Source: Salpingoeca rosetta (lineage: Eukaryota > Protista > Choanoflagellata). Taken from it: a stretch of DNA of 64,000 bases. The translations under genes were made by a program, and so were the position numbers. Under the pieces are notes generated by a model that was given only the letters and a program-made list of their open reading frames with translations, did no database searches and had not been told where the DNA came from. Location of the stretch: NCBI GenBank assembly GCA_033442325.1, contig JAWQFM010000021.1, positions 1,083,692 through 1,147,691 on the forward strand. The letters are read 5' to 3'. Every line of letters begins with the position of its first letter. Position 1 is the stretch's first letter. Below, piece by piece: positions 49,010-62,134 of the stretch.

Positions 49010-52000
49010 TCTACAGATTATGAGACCCAGCCACTCCTGATCATCATCGCCACTTGTCTCACACTCGCTTGTGCTTCTTCTCTCCCTTCTGCTTGTTCCC
49101 CTCTCTTGTTTCTCCATCACCCTTCTTGAGCGTGCAGTATGTCTGACCCGTCGGACCACGTCGTTTCCACGCCAGGATTCAAGATGGACCTGCCCAAGTT
49201 CTCTGGCTCGCCCGGCACCTTTCATGCGTGGAGCATTCGCATGAAGATGGCGCTCAATCTGCGCGGCGACGACGTCTGGGCAGCTGTGGAGGCAGGAGCA
49301 TCGTCATCGGGAGGTCCAAGCTCAGCGACACGCTCAAGTGCAAGGAGACCGACAGCAGGAGATCACGCCAACCTCACCGCTGCAAACCTCATCGCGTCCA
49401 CGCTCTCAGGCTACCCCCTTCTCCTGTTCACCAACGGAGAAGCAGACGTCAACGCCGGCCAAGGATGGGCCCGGCTCAAGGACCACTACGCTTCGCAGGA
49501 CCGCCTCCGCATTGCAGAGCTCAAGGAGGCGCAGCTTCACGTCCCCTGCGGCAACCTCGCCCGCTTCTTCGAGCGACACATGGAGCTGCAGCAGCAGTTG
49601 CAGGACGCGGGCGTGCGTCAGGACAACGAGGACCTCTTCACCATCGTCTGGAAGCAGCTGCCACGCTGGACAGCCCCGCTCACGCTTCCCTACTTTGCCA
49701 GTGGCCGCTTTCCCTCCCTCCTCGAGCTCAGCATCAGGCTGCAGCAGCTGGAGCAGCAGATGCGTGGTTCACGCACANNNNNNNNNNNNNNNNNNNNNNN
49801 NNNNNNNNNNNNNNNNNNNNNNNNNNNNNNNNNNNNNNNNNNNNNNNNNNNNNNNNNNNNNNNNNNNNNNNNNNNNNNNNNNNNNNNNNNNNNNNNNNNN
49901 NNNNNNNNNNNNNNNNNNNNNNNNNNNNNNNNNNNNNNNNNNNNNNNNNNNNNNNNNNNNNNNNNNNNNNNNNNNNNNNNNNNNNNNNNNNNNNNNNNNN
50001 NNNNNNNNNNNNNNNNNNNNNNNNNNNNNNNNNNNNNNNNNNNNNNNNNNNCCTTCGTCGCTGCCACAGCTACTACACCCACGCAGCTGCATGACCCACT
50101 CACGTGGCTTGCAGACACGGGTGCTTCACACCACCTCACCTTCGTCAAGGACGCCTTCGTGGAGCTGACACCGCACCTGCAACAGCACCATCCACGCCAC
50201 ATCACTGCGTTTGGCGGCACACGTGTGCCCGTGCGCGGTGTTGGCTCTGTGCTGTTGCATGCACGCACGACGAGCGGAGCCAGGATGCAGGTTGTGCTAC
50301 AGGAGTGCCTCTACGTGCCCGAGGGCCAGGCCAACCTCATCGCCCTCGGTCGTCTGACCAGGGACAGCAGCGGCAGGCCAACGGGCCACTCGCAGCGTGA
50401 TGGCGCTGATGGGCACTACGTGCGCTTCAGCCACGGAGCCGAGGTCAAGCTGAAGGAGCGCAACAGCCTCCGGTGCTGGCCCATTGTTGCTGTTGGTCCA
50501 TCCACGGCACACGGTCTCACCGCCGATGCCTGCAAGCAACCACAGCAACCCGCAGCAGCTCCTGCAGCCCAGAGCAAGGTGCAGACACCATCGATGCATG
50601 AGGTACTTGGCCACCGCAACGACAACGACGTGCAGCAGTACTGCAAGCTGATGGGCATCGACGATCGCAACGTCATCAGCAGCAAGCAGTGTACAACGTG
50701 CGCAGTGACCAAGAGCACTCGTCACAGCGTCAGCAAGCACGCGGAACGCACACAGGTGCCCGGCGAGCGCATCCACGCCGACATCGTCGACTGGACCGCG
50801 GACTCGCCCACGGGCAAGCGCTACAGCCTCGTCATCGTCGATGAGGGAAGCAAGCTCCTGCATGCAGTCCATCTCAACGCCAAGAAGGACGCAGTTGCCG
50901 CGTTCCAGTCTTTCCTGCGCGAGACCAAGCTCCCCATCTCACCCACAACAACAGCACTCCAGACGGATTCCGATGCCATCTTCCTCGGAGCTGACTTCCA
51001 GGCCATCGTCAAGAAGCACCTGAAGCAGCACCAGCAGTCCCCGCCGTACACCCAGGCGCAGAACGGCATCGTCGAGCGACAGGTGCGCACCCTCTCCGAC
51101 ATGGTGCGAGCCATGATCACGGGTGCAGGCCTCGACGCATCGTACTGGAGCCTCGCCTGTAACCACGCCCTCCACATCCTCAACAACATGCCTCGCCCTT
51201 CCCTCCACGGCAAGACACCGCTGCAGATTGTCACGGGCTCGCTGCCCAAGCACGTGCCGCAGCTGCACGTCTTCGCGCAGCCGGCCGTCGTCCACATCAG
51301 CACACAGCGCGGACGCCTGCAGCCCAAGGGCCGCCGAGGCATCTACGTCGGCCACAACAGCAGCAGCAACAGCCACCTCGTCTACTTTGAAGACACGAAC
51401 ACCGTTGTGTCCTCCATCCACGTCCGCTTCCTTCCCTTCTCCAAGGCCGATGATGTCGTGGATGAGGGGGAGGAGCAAGTGCAGACATCCACGACATCGT
51501 CCATGCTCCAGCTTCCCAGTGCACGTGACAGCAGCAACAGCACCACTGACGGTGAGCCACCAACGGTTCACATCGATGAGGACCAGGACGACGATGTCGA
51601 GACAGACTCCCTGCTCACGGACTTCGACAACGACAGCAGCAGCGACACCAACGACGCCAACTACGACCCCGACACAACAGATGCAAGCGACACCGAGGCA
51701 GGCGCGTTCACAGCAAGCAGCAGTGACGACACCAGCCTCACGGAGCCTGCAAGCATCAAGCAGGCACTCAAGAGCCAGCAACGCAAGCAGTGGACTCAGG
51801 CATGCTTGGAGGAGATCGGGGCCATGGAGCGCAACGGCGTCATCAAGCTCATCCCACGCAGCGCCGTGCCACGACAGCACACGCCTCTCAAGTCACGCTT
51901 CGTCTTCAAGGTGAAGCGTGACGCTGAGGGCGCGCCGACGCGCTTCAAGGCACGCTGGGTCGCCAAGGGCTTCAGCCAACGACCGGGCATCGACTTCGAC

Positions 52001-53457
52001 CAGACCTACGCCCCAACACCAGCAGCCAAGACCATCCTCACTGTACTCGCCGTCTCCCTGCAACGACAGCACCAGCTGCACCAGCTCGACTTCAAGTCGG
52101 CTTACCTGCAGGCTGATCTCAAGGAGGAGCTGTACATGGAGCTGCCGCCGCACTTCACCGACATCGGCGACGGCGCTCAACGCTACGCGGGCAAGGTGTG
52201 CCGGCTGCTCAAGCCGCTCTACGGCCTCAAGCAAGCTGGCCGTGCATGGGCCAAGAAGCTGCACACCTTCCTCAAGACCAACGGATGGGCGCAGAGCAAC
52301 GTCGACGCCTGCCTCTTCACCAAGCTCCACGACGACGGACAGCGCACATGGATCATCACGTACGTCGACGACCTCATCATCAGCGGCAGCAGCGAGCGCC
52401 ACATCCGTGCCTGCAAGCAGCAGATCAAGGAGAGCTTCGAGGCAGAGGACCTGGGCCCGCTCACCTGGTACCTGGGCCTTCACCTGACGTCACCAGCTGA
52501 CGGGGTGTTGCATATTGCGCAGACACAGGCCATCAACGACATCGTCAACGACTACAACCTGGCAGCGGCAGCCAGCGTGTCCACGCCCATGCGTGTTGGC
52601 ATCGACGCCTCCAGCATCAGCGAGCAGCCCGACCAACGCCTGCCTTTCCGCAACCTCGTCGGCTCGCTCCTGTACCTGGCCAACCGCACGAGACCAGACG
52701 TCAGCTTCGCGTGCGGACTGCTCTGCCGTTACATGGACCGTTACACGACGGTCCACTGGCAGGCAGCCAAGCACGTCGTGCGGTACCTGAAGGCGACGAG
52801 CGAGCACGGCCTCCTCTTCAAGCGACGCAGCGGCACGCGCAAGGACCAGCCGCTGGACCTTGTGTGCTACAGCGATGCCAGCTTCGGCACCGACCAGCTG
52901 ACGGGCCGCTCCACGACGGGCTTCACCTGCTACATCAACGGCNNNNNNNNNNNNNNNNNNNNNNNNNNNNNNNNNNNNNNNNNNNNNNNNNNNNNNNNNN
53001 NNNNNNNNNNNNNNNNNNNNNNNNNNNNNNNNNNNNNNNNNNNNNNNNNNNNNNNNNNNNNNNNNNNNCCTACACACGTGAGTTGTGTGCCATGTGTGTG
53101 TGTGTGTGTGCATGCCCGTCATGCTTGGCAAATGCCATGTGTGCGTGCCATGCAGTGTTGTGAAGTGTTGTCTGTTGTGTATGCTTGCCTGCAAGCATTC
53201 ATGCCATGCTTAGCATTGCTCTGCGCGCATGTATGCATGCTGCTCATTGTTTAGATTGTTTATGTTCGTGCACACTCTGCTCATGTCGCCTTGGCAGCTC
53301 TGTTGACTGTGTGTGCACTTGTCGAGTGTTTGTTTGAGCGTGCTGCCCGAGTTGATTTGGCAGCCGCTTGTTGTGCTTGTTCATTCTCCTTGTGTTCTTG
53401 TTTGTTGCGTTTGCCTACAGTAAACACACACACACACACACCTGTCGTGTCTCAACA
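49010..53457 (+). mobile_element. Ty1/copia element B: PBS-like site ~49016-49030, gag-pol 49139 to at least 52942, probable 3' LTR 53069-53457
   Basis: gag LPKFSG..FHAW; protease WLADTGASHH; HEVLGH..CTTC; integrase QNGIVER; RT FKARWVAKGFSQ, YVDD. GATTATGAGACCCAG resembles the copia GGTTATGGGCCCAG PBS. The LTR-like segment ends CTCAACA exactly where a minus-strand gag ORF is cut. Confidence 0.88.
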
Positions 53458-54125
53458 AAGTTGCAGAACGCGCAAGTCACGCGCTCTGCAGGTGGACAGC
53501 ATGGTCCACCGCTCGTGTCGGAGGGCGACGTGCCAGCGTGCATCGGCGATGCAGCGAAGGAGCCAGAGCCTGGCCCACCGATGGCGAGCACAGGCGTGCG
53601 CTTCTTGGGACGATGCAGGCGGCGCTCTTCCTGGATGAGGTCCGCCGTCATCTTGGACAGTGACGGCGGCGGGTCCTCGCGCTCCATGAACCGCATCGCC
53701 ACATCAAACTCCGCGGGGAGTTCGTTGCGGACGAGGGTGCGCAGGTCGTCCTCCGGGATGGACACGCCGGCAGCAAGGAGCTGCGAGTTGATGTCCGTGA
53801 TGCGGGACATGAACGTGTCGACGGTATCCGTGGGCAACCAGGTGGTTGAGGAGAGCTGCTGCCTGAGGCGGCTGACGTGGTCCTTGCCGCTGCGGATGTA
53901 GCGCTCGCGGAGACGGCGCAGCGCAAGCACACCGGAGCGGCCACGGTTGTTGGTGATGGCCAGCCGCAGCGGGTGTCCCGTCAGGACGCCAAGGAGGAAC
54001 GCGAAGCGAAGATGGCTGCGTCAACCTGTGGATCACGGGGATCCAGCAGGCCAGAGGCTCGGGACGCCACCTGCGCTCCTCCGCTCGGAGTGGCGGAAGA
54101 ATGGAGAGAGGAAGAGGACGAAGAT
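53458..54125 (-). pseudogene. Copia gag fragment (probably element A), cut at the zinc knuckle by element B and upstream by the Harbinger element
   Basis: LALRRLRERY..SRLRQQL..TVDTFMSRITDI..LPAEFD..LIQEERR..VTCAFC resembles retrotransposon gag. Frameshifted by a duplicated GCGAA at 54001-54010. Confidence 0.75.
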
Positions 54126-54289
54126 AGAGGATTTCTGCGACACAAGTTTGACAGACGAAATCTGACAAACAGCTCTTTTTTGTCGAGTCAGCAACTTTTA
54201 TTTGTCAGACTTGAGTGAGTGCGCCGTCAAACTTGTCAGATCCGATCCAACGTCCAAAGTTTGACAGAGGCAGGTTGTCTAAAGAAATC

Positions 54290-54648
54290 ATGGAGAATCC
54301 TCGCAAGAAGCGCAAGCGATCGCAGCTCACGCCACAAGAATGGGCGCAAGCCATTACATGGGCCGTGGAGGCAGACCTTCCACGTCTCAAAAGCAAGCAC
54401 GGCGTTGGAGCTAAGTGGCATGATGTGAAAGACCGGCTCGTGGCTCTAGTTCAAAAGAGGGACCGTTCGTTCAACATTACAACAGAAACCATGCAGGTAT
54501 GTCAGCGCGTGCGTGATTCTGTCCCTGTTTGTTGTGAGCGTGATGGAGAAGCATTGAACGTTGATGCCATCGATGGCGATGGCTGCTTCGGGGGTGCGCT
54601 CTCTTAATATACTGTGGTGTTTCTGGATTGTGTGTGTGCGTGTGTGCG

Positions 54649-54713
<65 letters not shown>

Positions 54714-55358
54714 CATTCGCACACAGAAACACATATTACGCCAGGTAGCTACCGCTCGTGATGCAGACAGCGCCAAGTCTCGGACCGGTTTGGGAGCTGA
54801 CATTCTTCACCCCGACATTCTGCAAGCAGCGAGGACATTTTACGAGATGGAAGACAAGCTCGTTCAGGACCGCCGCGAAGATGAGAAGCGCAGAAGCGAA
54901 GAGGATGCGCAGCTTGTGCGAGCTGCCATGGAGCGCCGTGCCAAGGAGTCTCGCTCCCCCGTGCATGAAGACGAGGAGCCCATTCCAGCGAGATTAGTGC
55001 AAGCAATGACACAGGCGCAGACACGGTGCGTCATACGATTGCGTGTGGCTGCTATTGCCGTTGCTGATGTTGTATGGTTGTGCGCCCCTCATTCACGATT
55101 GTTGCGTTGTTTAGGGCACTTGAGCTGGAGGAACAACGGGTGCAAATCGAGAAACAGAAGCAGGTACAGTCAGTTGCCTTCAGCGCGGTTTGTCGGTGTG
55201 CTGTCATGTTTTTATTCACCTGTGCTCATTTCATGCATCCGTTGCATCATCTGATTTCTGCACAGGAGGATAACAGCAAGGTCCTCGCAGCGATGCTGAA
55301 GAGCTTGGAAACAATGACCAAGACAATCGATGCGCTTTCCAAGGGGCGTGCACAATAA
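54290..55358 (+). CDS. Harbinger 1 accessory Myb/SANT-like DNA-binding protein, 4 exons
   Basis: MENPRKKRKR (NLS-like), Trp-spaced helical region (QEWAQAITW..AKWHDVKDRL), coiled-coil tail; phase-consistent introns; position inside the TIRs. Confidence 0.7.
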
Positions 55359-55476
55359 CCGTCCACCGCATGTTCTTCTCGGCGTCGTGTATTCTGTGTT
55401 CATGTTACCAAGCGCTTCGTGAAGCTTGTCACGGGTACCTTTACTTTCAGTAAACGCAAATACACAAAAGACACAG

Positions 55477-57088
55477 TCAATCATTCAAGAGGTATTCCTC
55501 GAGAGAAGGGGGGTGGCAAGCAAAGTACTTACTTGTTTGACTCCCGTAGAGACAATTCAAGCAGTTTGCAAGCAAGAAAGCGCAACGAATGAAAGAAGCG
55601 ACAGGGCCTTGCCCGACCTTCAGGCTCCTGCTGTATGTAATAAAAGCAAACGAGTTTCCAACACACCCGAACTCCCACTCCACACTGACCCTTACTGACG
55701 AAAGGTGTCTTCGAAGGTCAGCCTCAGGTGTTCCATTTTGTACGTTCCGAGGCAAGGGCAGTAGTCTTGCGGACCGAGCATATGCAGCATCTCCCAGAAC
55801 TTTCAAGGACGAGGAGAGGTGCTCAAGCTTGTCCGTTACGTGGGAGGCGGAGTAGATTCTGGCATCATGCCAGCGACCTGAAGCACCCGCACACAGAGAG
55901 AGTACCACACATATCAGCGTGATCAAGACTGTTGAGTGGGCAGGGGTTGGTTTGCTGTAACGAGAGTCTTCATCATGTCCGGCAGCGAGAACAAACCTGG
56001 TGCTGGTCCAAAGAGCGCGCCGATCATACCATTGGGAAGGGATATGGCCTGCAGCTTGAGTCCGTTGTGCCGTTTGTGCCTTACAGCAGCGAGGTTCGTG
56101 AAAACGCAGCATGAGCCCACTCAAGCACCCGATGAAGACACAATCTCCTCACACCTACACATATATTCATCACGAGCACGCAAACAATTAGAAGAACACA
56201 CCCATTGTAAGAAGCAATCTGATGGCGCCTATGTCGGGGGCGAGATATGGCAATGAGTGTCCCATCCACGAACCCTATGTGACACACACAAACGCAGGGA
56301 ACATATTGAGTTCTGCATGTCACTCGATACAACAACGACAACGAAAGAGATCTCCTGTGTTATCTGAAACTCATGTGCCTTCTTTGCAGGTGTAATGGTC
56401 TGGTTGCACTGGCTCTGTTGATGCATCGTCTGTCGTATCCATCCAGGCTCAGCACGATCCTACGGAGCTTCTGTGAGTCGCATTTTCATGCTCGTGTTGA
56501 CAATTGCATGCGGTCTATCTCAAATAAGCCCTCACCCACCTCTCGTTGCGATGTTTGTAGGCCTTAGCTGGTCTCCAGGGAAACTTTCAACGATCCTGTT
56601 GGACATTGCTGGGGATCTTTCGAGCAAGCACGCCTCCAGGCTGGAGTTCTCACGATACTTGTTTGCACAGCATAGGCTTCACGAGTACGCCGCATCTGTG
56701 CAGGAAAAGGGCGTGTCGTTGCCTGATAGCCAATTTATTTTCGGTGAGTGGACAAGGGGTGCAACGCAATATCGCCGTGAACGTCAAGCGTCAGTGCAAC
56801 GTACTTTGTGCGATGCTCTCGGCCATACCAAGGTCGAACATTCAGATTGATTGCCAGACGACGAAAATGGCTCAACGAGTGCACGCGAAAGAAGTACTTG
56901 AACTCCTTGTTGGTGAAGATGGTTAAGTCAAGGGTGTTGGACATGTCAACCCAGGCACGTGGCACACTCGCCAGTCGCCGATACATAAAGTAGAGTAGCA
57001 GAGCCTGACGCTGCTGAAACGTCTTGTGGGGCGATGCTGCAATTATCATCATCTGCTCGTCCACACCCCTCCAGGTCACTGCAGCCAT
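55477..57088 (-). CDS. Harbinger 1 DDE transposase. Exons 1, 4, 5, 6 on -, exons 2 (56390-56472) and 3 (56561-56743) on +
   Basis: GFVDGT, YNGHKRHNGLKLQ, GPAPGRWHD, LGDAAY, SSVRVSVEWEFG on -. The N-terminal part ALALLMHRLSYPSRL..LHEYAASVQEKG is on +. Confidence 0.82.
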
Positions 57089-57237
57089 GGTGCTTGTCTT
57101 GCTTGTGGATTCGAGTGGTTGGCGGGATCATCAACCTCTCTTGTCTGTCTGAGCTTTGTCAAGTTTGACTTTGACGACATTGCTAGCCCCGAACTGTCAG
57201 ATTTGATTTCGTCAAACTTGTGTCGCAGAAATCCTCT

Positions 57238-57445
57238 GATGGCTGAGCGCCGTGGTCGTCGCCATCGCCCTCGTCGTCATCATCGTCATCATGGTCCTCC
57301 ACGTCGTGGCGGGCGCCAGTGCGGCGCGGGCCGCGTTGAGCGCAGGAGCGAGTGCGGGGACCCGAAGCACCGTGGGTGCTTGGGCTCGGCGATGAGGCAG
57401 CTGCTGGAGCCTGCCCGTCTCCTTGGTGGTCAGCACCACCCTCGG
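57238..57445 (-). pseudogene. Upstream continuation of the copia gag interrupted by Harbinger 1
   Basis: Removing 54126-57237 and one GAT gives the continuous frame DDHGAQPSSSSSSLHSS. Confidence 0.6.
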
Positions 57446-57776
57446 TGTTGACAGGCAAGTTGTAACGTCGCTCGCCTGTCTCTTTCTGTCTCTCCCCTCT
57501 GCCTCTCCGACTCCCTTACCACTGCACCTTGTCCCGCTGTGTCCCACTGTTTCCCCCTTCTCGCCCTTCGAGGCATCGTATTGCTCTGGATGTTCTTTGT
57601 TCTCCTAATGTTCTGATGTCATGTTTAGTCTGATTGACGTCATGTTTAACTCGTGAGTGTCGTATAGTAGCGTTTGCCTGTGTCGTGTCACGCCGTGCCC
57701 AGTGCCTCGGAACTGCTTGCCTCTCGGCGGCGATCCCGTCATCAACTAAGATGACGGCACGACACATGCCTGCATG
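57446..57776 (+). mobile_element. First 15 bp of a family-A LTR (TGTTGACAGGCAAGT, opposite orientation) followed by a probable different LTR starting TGTAACG at 57461
   Basis: Exact 15-nt match to the LTR-A 5' terminus, then an abrupt switch to unrelated sequence beginning TGTAAC that runs into a gap. Confidence 0.55.
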
Positions 57777-57876
57777 NNNNNNNNNNNNNNNNNNNNNNNN
57801 NNNNNNNNNNNNNNNNNNNNNNNNNNNNNNNNNNNNNNNNNNNNNNNNNNNNNNNNNNNNNNNNNNNNNNNNNNNN

Positions 57877-58138
57877 GGTGACCAGCAGAAGACAGGATTT
57901 GTCGACATCGCAATAGTGGTGTCGTGGTCAGTGTTTGTTGAGACTTCTGTGCTTATATGGTGTGTTACCCAAGAGCATGTAACATTGAGCAACCACACAA
58001 GCTAAACACGGCACGTGCGACAGGTTGGAGGGAAATCACGTGAACGTTCCAGAACACAAGAGAGGTGAGTGCAAATTTGTGGTGTCGTGAAGAAGGGAGG
58101 TCAATGATGACTCAGCAGACAGGACTTGCCTGTCAACA
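57877..58138 (-). mobile_element. Partial family-A LTR beside a gap
   Basis: Aligns to ~44560-44814, is more divergent near the gap, and ends TGTCAACA. Confidence 0.8.
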
Positions 58139-58362
58139 GTAGTACTTCCAGCATACCTCACTCGCGTACTTTCCTCAAGTAGCGTTTCAACGGTACTGTG
58201 CTGGACTCAATTGTGACCTTTTTTCTTTCACCCAGTAGCACCGTATGCCGTAGCACTCATATGGGTGCAGGGTAGCTGAGTGTGCGTTGTAGCACTAGTG
58301 TCACTGTTTCGTTAACACAGGAGAAGATTCCTGACGCACAACAAAACACAACTGTAGAACAC

Positions 58363-58780
58363 TCATGGTGATGGTGCTGTTGTTGGAGACTTGTGTGTGT
58401 GTGTGTGCTGTGTGTGCTGTGTGTTGTGTGGGAGATTGTCTTGGCAAGAGAGAGTTGTGTGTGTTTACTTGAGTTGTGAAGCAAACAAGGATGTAGGATG
58501 AATGAACACTCCAACAGAAAGAAACAGAGCAGAAGACAAGAATTGTCGACAACGCAAAGTGGTGACGTGGCAGTGTTTGTTGAGAGTTGTGTGGTTATAT
58601 GGTGTGTTATGCAAGAGCATGTAACATCGAGCAACCACACAAGCTAAACACTGCACGTGCGACAGGTTGGAGGGAAATCACGTGAACGTTCCAGAACACA
58701 AGAGAGGTGAGTGCAAATTTGTGGTGTCGTGAAGAAGGGAGGTCAATGATGACTCAGCAGACAGGACTTGCCTGTCAACA
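58363..58780 (-). mobile_element. Family-A LTR with a degenerate left terminus
   Basis: Near-identical to 44392-44814. Confidence 0.85.
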
Positions 58781-59605
58781 GTAGTACTTCCAGCATACCT
58801 CACTGTCTTACCATAAAGCTGTCATGACAGACACCAGTGTTGTGGAAAGTATGTAAGCTCAGAATAACCACAAAGAAACATGTGTACCACAGAAGTCAAA
58901 CATGCATGTCAGCTTACCTTCAAAGCCACTGGCAACGAAGCTGAACGTCCGATCGTGGCGAATCGCGACAAAAACGTTCATTGCATAGAACTTCTTGCGG
59001 CACATCCAAGCTGACGTTTCTTCTTCGGTCATCCCAATGTTTCGAAAAGGCACCAAGGTACCATCTGCTGTTGCAAGTTCATGGTGGTGGTGCTGTTGTT
59101 GGAGACTTGTGTGTGTGTGTGTGCTGTGTGTGCAGAGTGTGCTGTGTGTTGTGTGGGAGATTGTCTTGGCAAGAGGAAGTTGTGTGTGTTTACTTGAGTT
59201 GTGAAGCAAACAAGGATGTAGGATGAATGAACACTCCAACAGAAAGAAACAGAGCAGAAGACAAGAATTGTCGACAACGCAAAGTGGTGACGTGGCAGTG
59301 TTTGTTGAGAGTTGTGTGGTTATGTGGTGTGTTATGCAAGAGCATGTAACATCGAGCAACCACACAAGCTAAACACTGCACGTGCAACAGGTTGGAGGGA
59401 AATCACGTGAACATTCCAGAACACAAGAGAGGTGAATGCAAATTTGTGGTGTCGTGAAGAAGGGAGGTCAATGATGACTCAGCAGACAGGACTTGCCTGT
59501 CAACATCTGCAGCGCCAATGCAGCATGCGAAGTACGGGTCTTGGTCAGTCCAAGCGGCCAGTTCATTGGCAATATCTTCGGCCGTTTGCGGAAACGCAAA
59601 CAGCG
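58781..59605 (-). pseudogene. Harbinger 2 transposase relic disrupted by LTR insertions
   Basis: FPQTAEDIA..YFACCIGAA|DGTLVPF..WMCRKKFYAMNV..HDRTF..SGFEG..CHDSFM, then TGA. Clearly paralogous to 59932-62134. Confidence 0.82.
59069..59505 (-). mobile_element. Solo family-A LTR with 5-bp TSD TCTGC
   Basis: TCTGC at 59064-59068 and 59506-59510 flanks TGTTGCAAG...TGTCAACA. Confidence 0.93.
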
Positions 59606-60908: not shown

Positions 60909-62134
60909 TGTGTGTGTCTGTCTGTCTGTGTATTTGTGTGCGTATGTGTGTCTGTGTATTTGTGTGCGTCTGTGTGTCTGTGTATTTGCGTGCGTGCGTG
61001 CGTGCGTGTGTGTGTGTGTGCGCGTCTGTGTGTGTCTGTGCGTGTGTGTCTGTGCGTGTGTGTCTGTGTGTCTGTGCCTCTGTGTGTGTATGTATTTGTG
61101 TGCGTCTGTGTGTGTGTGTGTGCGTCAGCAGTCGCTGACCTACCTCAGCAGTCGCTGACCTACCTCGCAAGCACAGTGTATGCTCACGTACTGCATGAAC
61201 CTGTGCCTGCCTGCGTGCGTGTACGTTCGTGTTTGTGTGCGCGGGTATGTGTGTATGTGCATGTGTGGTCGTGAAACAGGTATCTCCGAGTCAAAGCGGA
61301 AAACGTGGTTCTGCAGAAAGGAAAAGCAGGCAATGAATGTATTGGTTAGTGTAAACCATGACCGCACTTTCCAGTATGTCAGCGCGGGATTTGAAGGTAT
61401 GCATCATCTCTCGTATTGTTTTAACCTCCTTTGCCCGGTAGTCTGTCAACTAGACATCGTAGCTCCTTTCATCGTGTGTTACATGGATGTTGCAGGTGCT
61501 TGCCATGACTCCTTCATGATCACCAAAGTTGGGTTCGTCGACCGCATCCCTACTGGAACGTATGTCCTGTTTGATGCGGGCGGTCCGCTTGTGGAGCATC
61601 GCATCCTCGTTCCCTTCAAAGGTATGATAGATGGGTGTGCGTGCATGCATACGTGTGTGCGTGCGCATGGCTGTATGACGTATGTACGTGCATGTGTGTG
61701 TATGCTTCGTGTGCGTGCACGGTTGTATGATGCGTGTGGATATTCATTCACTTGTGTTGTGACTCCATTGGCCGTCCTGCATCGCAGCAACACGCTACCA
61801 TGTCAGTGCCTTCACAGATAATCCACCACTCAATGCAAAGGAGGCATTTAACTGGAGACACTCCAGCAAACGCATGAGAGTGGAGCAGGCAATAGGCCAC
61901 CTCAAGCAGCGTTTCCAGATACTAGCACAGGAGAAGCTGACATGCACGCCCGAACGGGCAGTCGACTTCGTGCTTGCAAGTGCTGCACTTCACAACTACA
62001 TCGGGGCACCAGACGACACTGAAGTACCCCTCTACCAAGATGCTCCGATACCCACAAACCAAGCACCCACCCAACAAGCGATGCAGTGGCGCCAACACAT
62101 TGCTGATGCTTGCTTTGAACAGTGGTGTTCATAA
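59932..62134 (+). CDS. Harbinger 3 DDE transposase (HARBI1-like), 7 exons
   Basis: [88 protein letters not shown]. Confidence 0.87.

Follow-up and report, generated by a model that had tools for sequence, protein, structure and literature searches.

How a transposase gene comes to have two of its six exons on the opposite strand while every splice site and reading phase is intact, and whether such a gene can still be used, are the questions raised by a PIF/Harbinger element of the choanoflagellate Salpingoeca rosetta. The element lies within the window, a stretch of 64,000 nucleotides of contig JAWQFM010000021.1 (assembly GCA_033442325.1), and all positions given here are those of the window unless another contig is named. 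An earlier note on this DNA had offered three readings of the arrangement: a one-off inactivating inversion, a reversible ON/OFF cassette, and trans-splicing between transcripts of opposite strands. The first fits all of the evidence described here, and the switch and trans-splicing readings are unsupported by it. The locus is best read, and very probably correctly so, as the product of one inactivating inversion that is fairly recent and whose two breakpoints lie in introns.

A transposase reading frame divided between two strands

When joined in the order 1-2-3-4-5-6, the transposase exons (Table 1) form a frame of 1107 nt and 368 codons with no stop, and this stop-free frame requires that exons 2 and 3, on the plus strand, be read between the minus-strand exons 1 and 4. 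The exon coordinates, strands, splice readings, and joined frame as first described all hold on re-extraction from both strands. Exon 6 matches the Pfam family DDE_Tnp_4 (PF13359) with an E value of 8.9e-8 and 32.3 bits (cut-off, 24.8), covering profile positions 52 to 158. A Pfam search with exons 1, 2, 3, and 5 as single sequences gave no match; these exons are too short for Pfam, and their homology was therefore tested through paralogues and full-length relatives, as described below. The motifs VDGT (residue 187), GDAAY (265), and VEWEF (302) of the joined protein, which we take to be the D-D-E triad of the transposase, line up with the corresponding paralogue motifs. A joined frame of this length that also has the order of its family is far beyond chance.

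Table 1. Positions of SrosHar, its genes, and the sequences at its ends and breakpoints
Feature	Position	Strand	Description
Left flank, dispersed repeat interrupted by SrosHar	53726-54125		continues at 57238-57451
TSD GAT, left copy	54123-54125		flanks left TIR
Whole SrosHar PIF/Harbinger element	54126-57237	-	3112 bp; ends set by the TIR pair
Left TIR, 27 bp	54126-54152	+	27/27 complement of 57211-57237
Second ORF, four exons	54290-55358	+	215 aa, intact; exons 54290-54496, 54727-55025, 55115-55163, 55266-55358
Transposase exon 6 and stop codon	55477-55877	-	second D and E of the triad; Pfam DDE_Tnp_4
Transposase exon 5	55997-56079	-	homology to L003 and L008
Transposase exon 4	56202-56274	-	after CACATAG; first catalytic D, in GFVDGT
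Left composite spacer, 115 nt	56275-56389		two diverging acceptors (CTATG..., ...TTTGCAG); holds the left breakpoint
Transposase exon 2, inverted	56390-56472	+	aa 95-122; after TTTGCAG, before GTGAGT
Transposase exon 3, inverted	56561-56743	+	aa 123-183; after TGTAG, before GTGAGT
Right composite spacer, 61 nt	56744-56804		two facing donors (GTGAGT..., ...ACGTAC); holds the right breakpoint
Inverted repeat arms, 9/10 match	56303-56312 and 56763-56772		equal or better match in 10% of shuffles
Transposase exon 1	56805-57088	-	aa 1-94 plus 2 nt; ends CGC ACA AA, donor GTACGT; common to the published model
Right TIR, 27 bp	57211-57237	-	pairs with 54126-54152
TSD GAT, right copy	57238-57240		flanks right TIR

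The element is SrosHar, an insertion in a dispersed repeat

The gene belongs to SrosHar, published in 2019 as a Harbinger element present once in the Salpingoeca rosetta genome (Southworth et al. 2019, Mob DNA 10:44, PMC6875170). The element in the window equals the entry in Table 2 of that survey in its length (3112 bp), its 27-bp ITR, and its 3-bp TSD, and two exact 60-mers of published SrosHar are found on the minus strand at 57178-57237 and 56758-56817. The transposase is coded on the minus strand, and the plus strand carries the second ORF. Similarity between the TIRs reaches about 42 nt at 91%. A narrow TIR search, in which 55300-55500 was compared with 57080-57300, found none; the left TIR lies farther out, at 54126, and was found by a wider search. 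A repeat search of 54720-57737 returned weak pairs only.

SrosHar interrupts a repeat that is present in more than 20 genome copies, 93 to 97% alike. The left flank is 96% identical to three paralogues of this repeat (L021 to L023), in which it is contiguous with the right flank; these uninterrupted copies represent empty sites, and the two flanks of SrosHar overlap on them by exactly one GAT. Perfect TIRs, the duplicated GAT, and the empty sites in the repeat paralogues mark SrosHar as a true insertion. The usual TSD of PIF/Harbinger elements is TAA or TTA (TWA), and that of SrosHar is GAT. Several other copies of the host repeat (53726-54125 and 57238-57451) are located near Harbinger-like paralogues on contigs C23, C44, C16, and C20.

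The transposase region is present as a single copy in a DNA search of its own genome, which found no other copy of the region and no uninverted one; the published survey also describes SrosHar as single copy (PMC6875170). The sole other trace of the element in the genome is a relic of 296 bp (L018, at C26:378577-378872) that is 96% identical to window positions 55095-55390, corresponding to the last part of the partner ORF and the region 3' to it. This relic appears as a second "allele" in both DNA and RNA contigs.

The partner gene, the second ORF of the element, reads without a stop when its four exons are joined, and the junction between its exons 2 and 3 (55025/55115) is present in an RNA contig of run X19. 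Raw reads of run X31 cover it at low depth on the plus strand, which is the expected sense. A Pfam search of the correct second-ORF exons gave no family and no Myb/SANT match, and no paralogue of this ORF was found in the same genome; because there is no Pfam match, a Myb-like label for it would reflect its position in a Harbinger element alone. A (GT)n/(GTGC)n microsatellite occupies 54613-54716, within intron 1 of the second ORF. The TIRs, TSD, and intact partner gene reported in the earlier note are thus all present (27-bp TIRs, GAT, and a 215-aa ORF).

A copia-type LTR retrotransposon frame of 1371 aa (49139-53254, plus strand), with RVT_2 (E, 4e-55), rve, and gag pre-integrase matches, lies just to the left of the repeat interrupted by SrosHar, and SrosHar may be in or beside the terminal region of this copia-type element. 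To the right, a second high-copy repeat (57454-57737) extends up to an N gap (57738-57877) and has copies 89 to 97% identical on many contigs; its DNA k-mer depth sums to thousands, and its RNA depth is strong, at 60 to 130 in X31. Because the X31 reads on this repeat are 95 to 99% alike, this RNA comes from other copies of the repeat. Directly after the N gap are three tandem units of about 640 to 725 bp (57880-59540) that are 86 to 98% alike. Two ORFs in this neighborhood, at 58862-59365 (minus strand; weak DDE_Tnp_4 match, E 5.6e-5) and 61180-61818 (plus strand; DDE_Tnp_4 match, E 4.9e-7), are further diverged Harbinger-like fragments.

Relatives of the transposase are collinear

A six-frame search with exon 6 identifies paralogues in the same genome at about 40 to 46% identity, and a tblastn search with the joined protein shows that in four of them (L003, L005, L008, and L010) the part homologous to exons 2 and 3 is on the same strand as the rest. 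In the alignments of this set of four, no gap falls at the exon 1/2, 2/3, or 3/4 junction; exon 1/2 is spanned without a gap in L003 and L010, and exon 3/4 in L005 and L010. L003 and L004 (C1:2311513 and C1:2317099) are identical last exons of a paralogous Harbinger-like gene located 5.6 kb apart, and within the flank examined, upstream exons are found near L003 only and not near L004.

The same order is found in other organisms. A search of 1.84 billion representative proteins yields 2236 relatives of the joined protein, 36 of which are full length (330 to 400 aa) and from other organisms, and the joined protein aligns with these end to end. A single HSP spans both strand-switch junctions in 22 of the 36, with E values down to 4e-53. 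None of the relatives among the 1.84 billion representatives exceeds about 50% identity or, in the database search itself, has an E value below 1e-30, leaving no orthologue for comparison. Judged by these alignments, the order of the family is collinear, with the middle turned over in the SrosHar copy alone. The earlier note had proposed alignment of other genomic copies as a check, and this came out on the side of an inversion: the paralogues in the same genome, at about 40 to 46% identity, are collinear, and there is no second SrosHar transposase copy.

The inverted order is present in independent DNA data

An inverted block of this size could also be a product of assembly, with the assembler having flipped 0.5 kb of a gene that is really collinear, and some plausibility comes from the N gap (57738-57877) and from repeats, collapsed or in tandem, at a distance of only 0.65 kb. 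However, there is no repeat at the breakpoints long enough to mislead an assembler, and k-mer assemblies from two different studies, made in 2018 and 2025, each recover the region as one contig with no more than one difference. In run X4 (2018, study P2) this is a contig of 1959 nt that corresponds to 55293-57251 with 1 difference, at a depth of 163 relative to 164 for the flank, and in run X8 (2025, study P4) it is a contig of 1999 nt that corresponds to 55269-57267 with 0 differences. Because independent contigs cross both breakpoints and keep the inverted order at single-copy depth, misassembly, which had been named as the way in which the observation might fail, is excluded for practical purposes, and an artefact of this kind is barely conceivable.

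Among the available data, 18 runs from 7 studies contain 93% or more of the words sampled from 55400-57400, and three runs of a third study contain 100% of the sampled gene words. No alternative joints within 54740-57737 are reported in any of four runs, in reads or contigs. The contigs of the two DNA runs (X4 and X8) hold a single orientation, with the qualification that Logan contigs drop rare variants; all sequencing runs are probably from one isolate, and the data speak for that isolate and not for natural populations.

Both breakpoints lie in introns

The strand switches had been placed within introns in the earlier note, and the two composite spacers agree with this, with donors that face each other in the right spacer and acceptors that diverge in the left. 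The left spacer is made up of the 3' parts of the old intron 3 (minus sense) and the old intron 1 (plus sense), and the right spacer of their 5' parts, with intron 3 in plus and intron 1 in minus sense. Together the spacers come to 176 nt, close to two ordinary introns of the transposase gene, the others of which are 88, 122, and 119 nt. In L003, L005, and L010, the positions of introns 1 and 3 are without an intron, and the evidence that these introns existed before the inversion consists of the splice sites, all four of them intact, and the lengths of the spacers. As there is no uninverted copy or allele, and the ancestral order derives from the paralogues, the exact breakpoints cannot be placed within the spacers.

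The history of the element would then begin with the insertion of SrosHar into a copy of the dispersed repeat, with duplication of GAT, and the inversion would have followed. We infer one inversion of about 0.45 to 0.53 kb with breakpoints somewhere in 56275-56389 and 56744-56804; the inverted block would comprise exons 2 and 3 with intron 2 between them, together with the 3' part of intron 1 on one side and the 5' part of intron 3 on the other. Two breaks that were rejoined, or template switching at microhomology, could have produced it. Because both breaks lie within introns, the four splice sites and all of the phases are left unchanged, and selection is not needed to account for them. In neutral terms the event was probably fairly recent, as ten splice sites are intact along with the two ORFs, the TIRs, and the TSD. 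As a rough estimate, if about 15% of neutral changes disable the frame, this suggests that neutral divergence since the loss of constraint is less than about 1 to 2%.

The order of these two events could also have been the reverse, with an inverted, non-autonomous copy moved to this site by the transposase of another copy that has since been lost. Mobilization needs the TIRs only, and the 96% relic at C26:378577-378872 implies that other copies once existed. Such a course is less simple than an inversion in place, however, and no other copy of the transposase region is left for comparison; we consider it unlikely, and it alters only the order of events and not the nature of the feature. An inversion of the inserted element is therefore retained as the preferred reading.

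The breakpoints have little in the way of repeats. The 9/10 inverted repeat described in the earlier note is present at the two places given for it, one arm in each spacer, but its role as a mark of the breakpoints is unsupported, since shuffled sequences give an equal or better match in 10% of cases; it may represent breakpoint microhomology, and at this chance level it is not evidence of it. No other inverted repeat of at least 14 nt is found within both spacers. There are also no direct repeats longer than 15 nt flanking the inverted exons, the longest in 55400-57237 being 15 nt at 80% identity.

These observations also bear on a reversible cassette, in which a recombinase would flip the exon 2-3 block, the collinear state being ON and the state seen here OFF. 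Breakpoints in introns would allow both states to splice cleanly, and the inverted 10-mer does have one arm in each spacer. However, the frequency of such matches in shuffles and the lack of any longer inverted repeat speak against a recombination site, contigs of two independent DNA studies show one orientation at full single-copy depth with no joints, and no recombinase gene is seen in SrosHar, which has two ORFs only. To our knowledge, programmed inversion of the exon-cassette kind is not established in opisthokont nuclear genes, and a switch at this locus is exceedingly improbable.

The transposase gene is not seen to be expressed

Raw RNA reads of run X31 (about one-fourth of the run) have a depth of 0 over 55440-57139, while a few fall on the partner ORF. 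Run X19 has two short stretches of low-depth RNA within the transposase, one at 55626-55879, inside exon 6, and one at 56721-56873; the latter is unspliced, because it matches the genome continuously across the right breakpoint. That X19 is real RNA is indicated by the spliced junction in the partner ORF. The joined mRNA for which the earlier note had suggested a search did not come to light, with no exon 1-2 or exon 3-4 junction seen in RNA reads or contigs of any of four runs. In 11 transcriptome runs, the published survey found a single 20-bp read on SrosHar, and the element was called silent (PMC6875170).

On the transposase strand, exon 1 to exon 4 is the one splice still possible in cis. 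This shifts the frame and leads to a stop after 109 residues, so that no transposase can be made, and the gene has almost certainly been killed by the inversion. Because the sole copy cannot encode its transposase, the SrosHar family is dead in the sequenced strain.

The intactness of the dead gene could also mean that it is still used. One way would be trans-splicing, with plus-strand exons 2 and 3 transcribed separately from minus-strand exons 1 and 4 to 6 and the pieces joined in trans. The four splice sites and all phases are intact and the frame has not decayed, low-depth RNA pieces are present in the gene in run X19 (55626-55879 and 56721-56873), and there is a precedent for inverted exons repaired in trans (PMC11414722). 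Intact sites are expected anyway after a recent inversion with intronic breakpoints, however, and the RNA gives no sign of the process: there are no raw reads on the gene in X31, no joints in any run, and the single 20-bp read in the 11 transcriptomes (PMC6875170), and the X19 piece at the right breakpoint is unspliced. No flanking direct repeat exceeds 15 nt, compared with about 930 bp at eri-6/7, and two trans joins would be needed rather than one. Rescue by trans-splicing is accordingly very improbable.

More generally, continued use of the inverted exons, either through two trans-splicings or through a flip back in rare cells, would yield a working transposase and would explain why there is no decay, and we give it an equally small chance. 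If this is true, choanoflagellates and transposons would each have their first example of a repair like that at eri-6/7. The switch and trans-splicing readings are unsupported and even when taken together are quite improbable. A gene expressed by trans-splicing would be remarkable, and nothing points that way; a one-off inactivating inversion is the reading kept here.

The published gene model requires correction

The inversion is not reported in the 2019 survey, and its 378-aa model (Additional file 2) keeps exons 1 and 4 (PMC6875170). For the gap between these, the model takes the minus-strand reading of window positions 56676-56540, antisense to exon 3, from which the published peptide is reproduced exactly, and the model also runs through the two introns around exon 5 (within 55480-56119). 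About 46 residues of the published SrosHar protein are thus from the wrong strand, to which the intron read-through is added, and about one-third of the published 378-aa protein does not belong to the real protein. The region of the partner ORF is labeled as 3' UTR in the survey, which states one gene per transposon family (PMC6875170). In a literature search, SrosHar is named only by this survey.

The correction is the main value of the present analysis, as the published protein served in a superfamily tree and in codon-usage statistics. The true protein is a normal Harbinger transposase of 368 aa that is split by an inversion, and the second ORF of the element had been overlooked. Two details, the inversion and the second ORF, are thus added to a known element; they involve no new mechanism, and the change is an ordinary mutation. 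An inversion with intronic breakpoints can nevertheless mimic an engineered cassette, and SrosHar provides a clean test case for gene finders.

Comparison with known systems

SrosHar resembles other members of the PIF/Harbinger superfamily in its DDE_Tnp_4 domain, D-D-E residues, TIRs, 3-bp TSD, and two ORFs, and it differs from them in that exons 2 and 3 of the transposase are inverted and the second ORF has no detectable Myb/SANT domain.

The closest parallel to the arrangement is eri-6/7 of Caenorhabditis elegans (Fischer and Ruvkun 2008; Zhang et al. 2024, PMC11414722), in which the exons of one ancestral gene are likewise on opposite strands after an inversion. There, a Polinton-caused inversion is offset by trans-splicing, in which direct repeats of about 930 bp assist, and the collinear gene is kept in some strains and species (PMC11414722). 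The block at eri-6/7 is the 5' end of a host gene, whereas that in SrosHar is internal and would require two trans-joins; the eri-6/7 repeats derive from Polinton TIRs, whereas SrosHar has no flanking repeats; and a fused mRNA is observed at eri-6/7, whereas SrosHar has no joined or abundant RNA.

A second comparison is with Drosophila mod(mdg4), for which the account in PMC4387717 describes coding exons of one protein on both strands, as in SrosHar. In that account, mod(mdg4) is a conserved and expressed host gene with dedicated intronic trans-splicing signals, in which it differs from SrosHar.

SrosHar is most like the micro-inversions that arise as spontaneous structural mutations, with a single sub-kilobase inversion, little or no homology at the breakpoints, and a disrupted gene. 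Its only special feature among these is that both breaks are intronic, such that whole exons were flipped intact.
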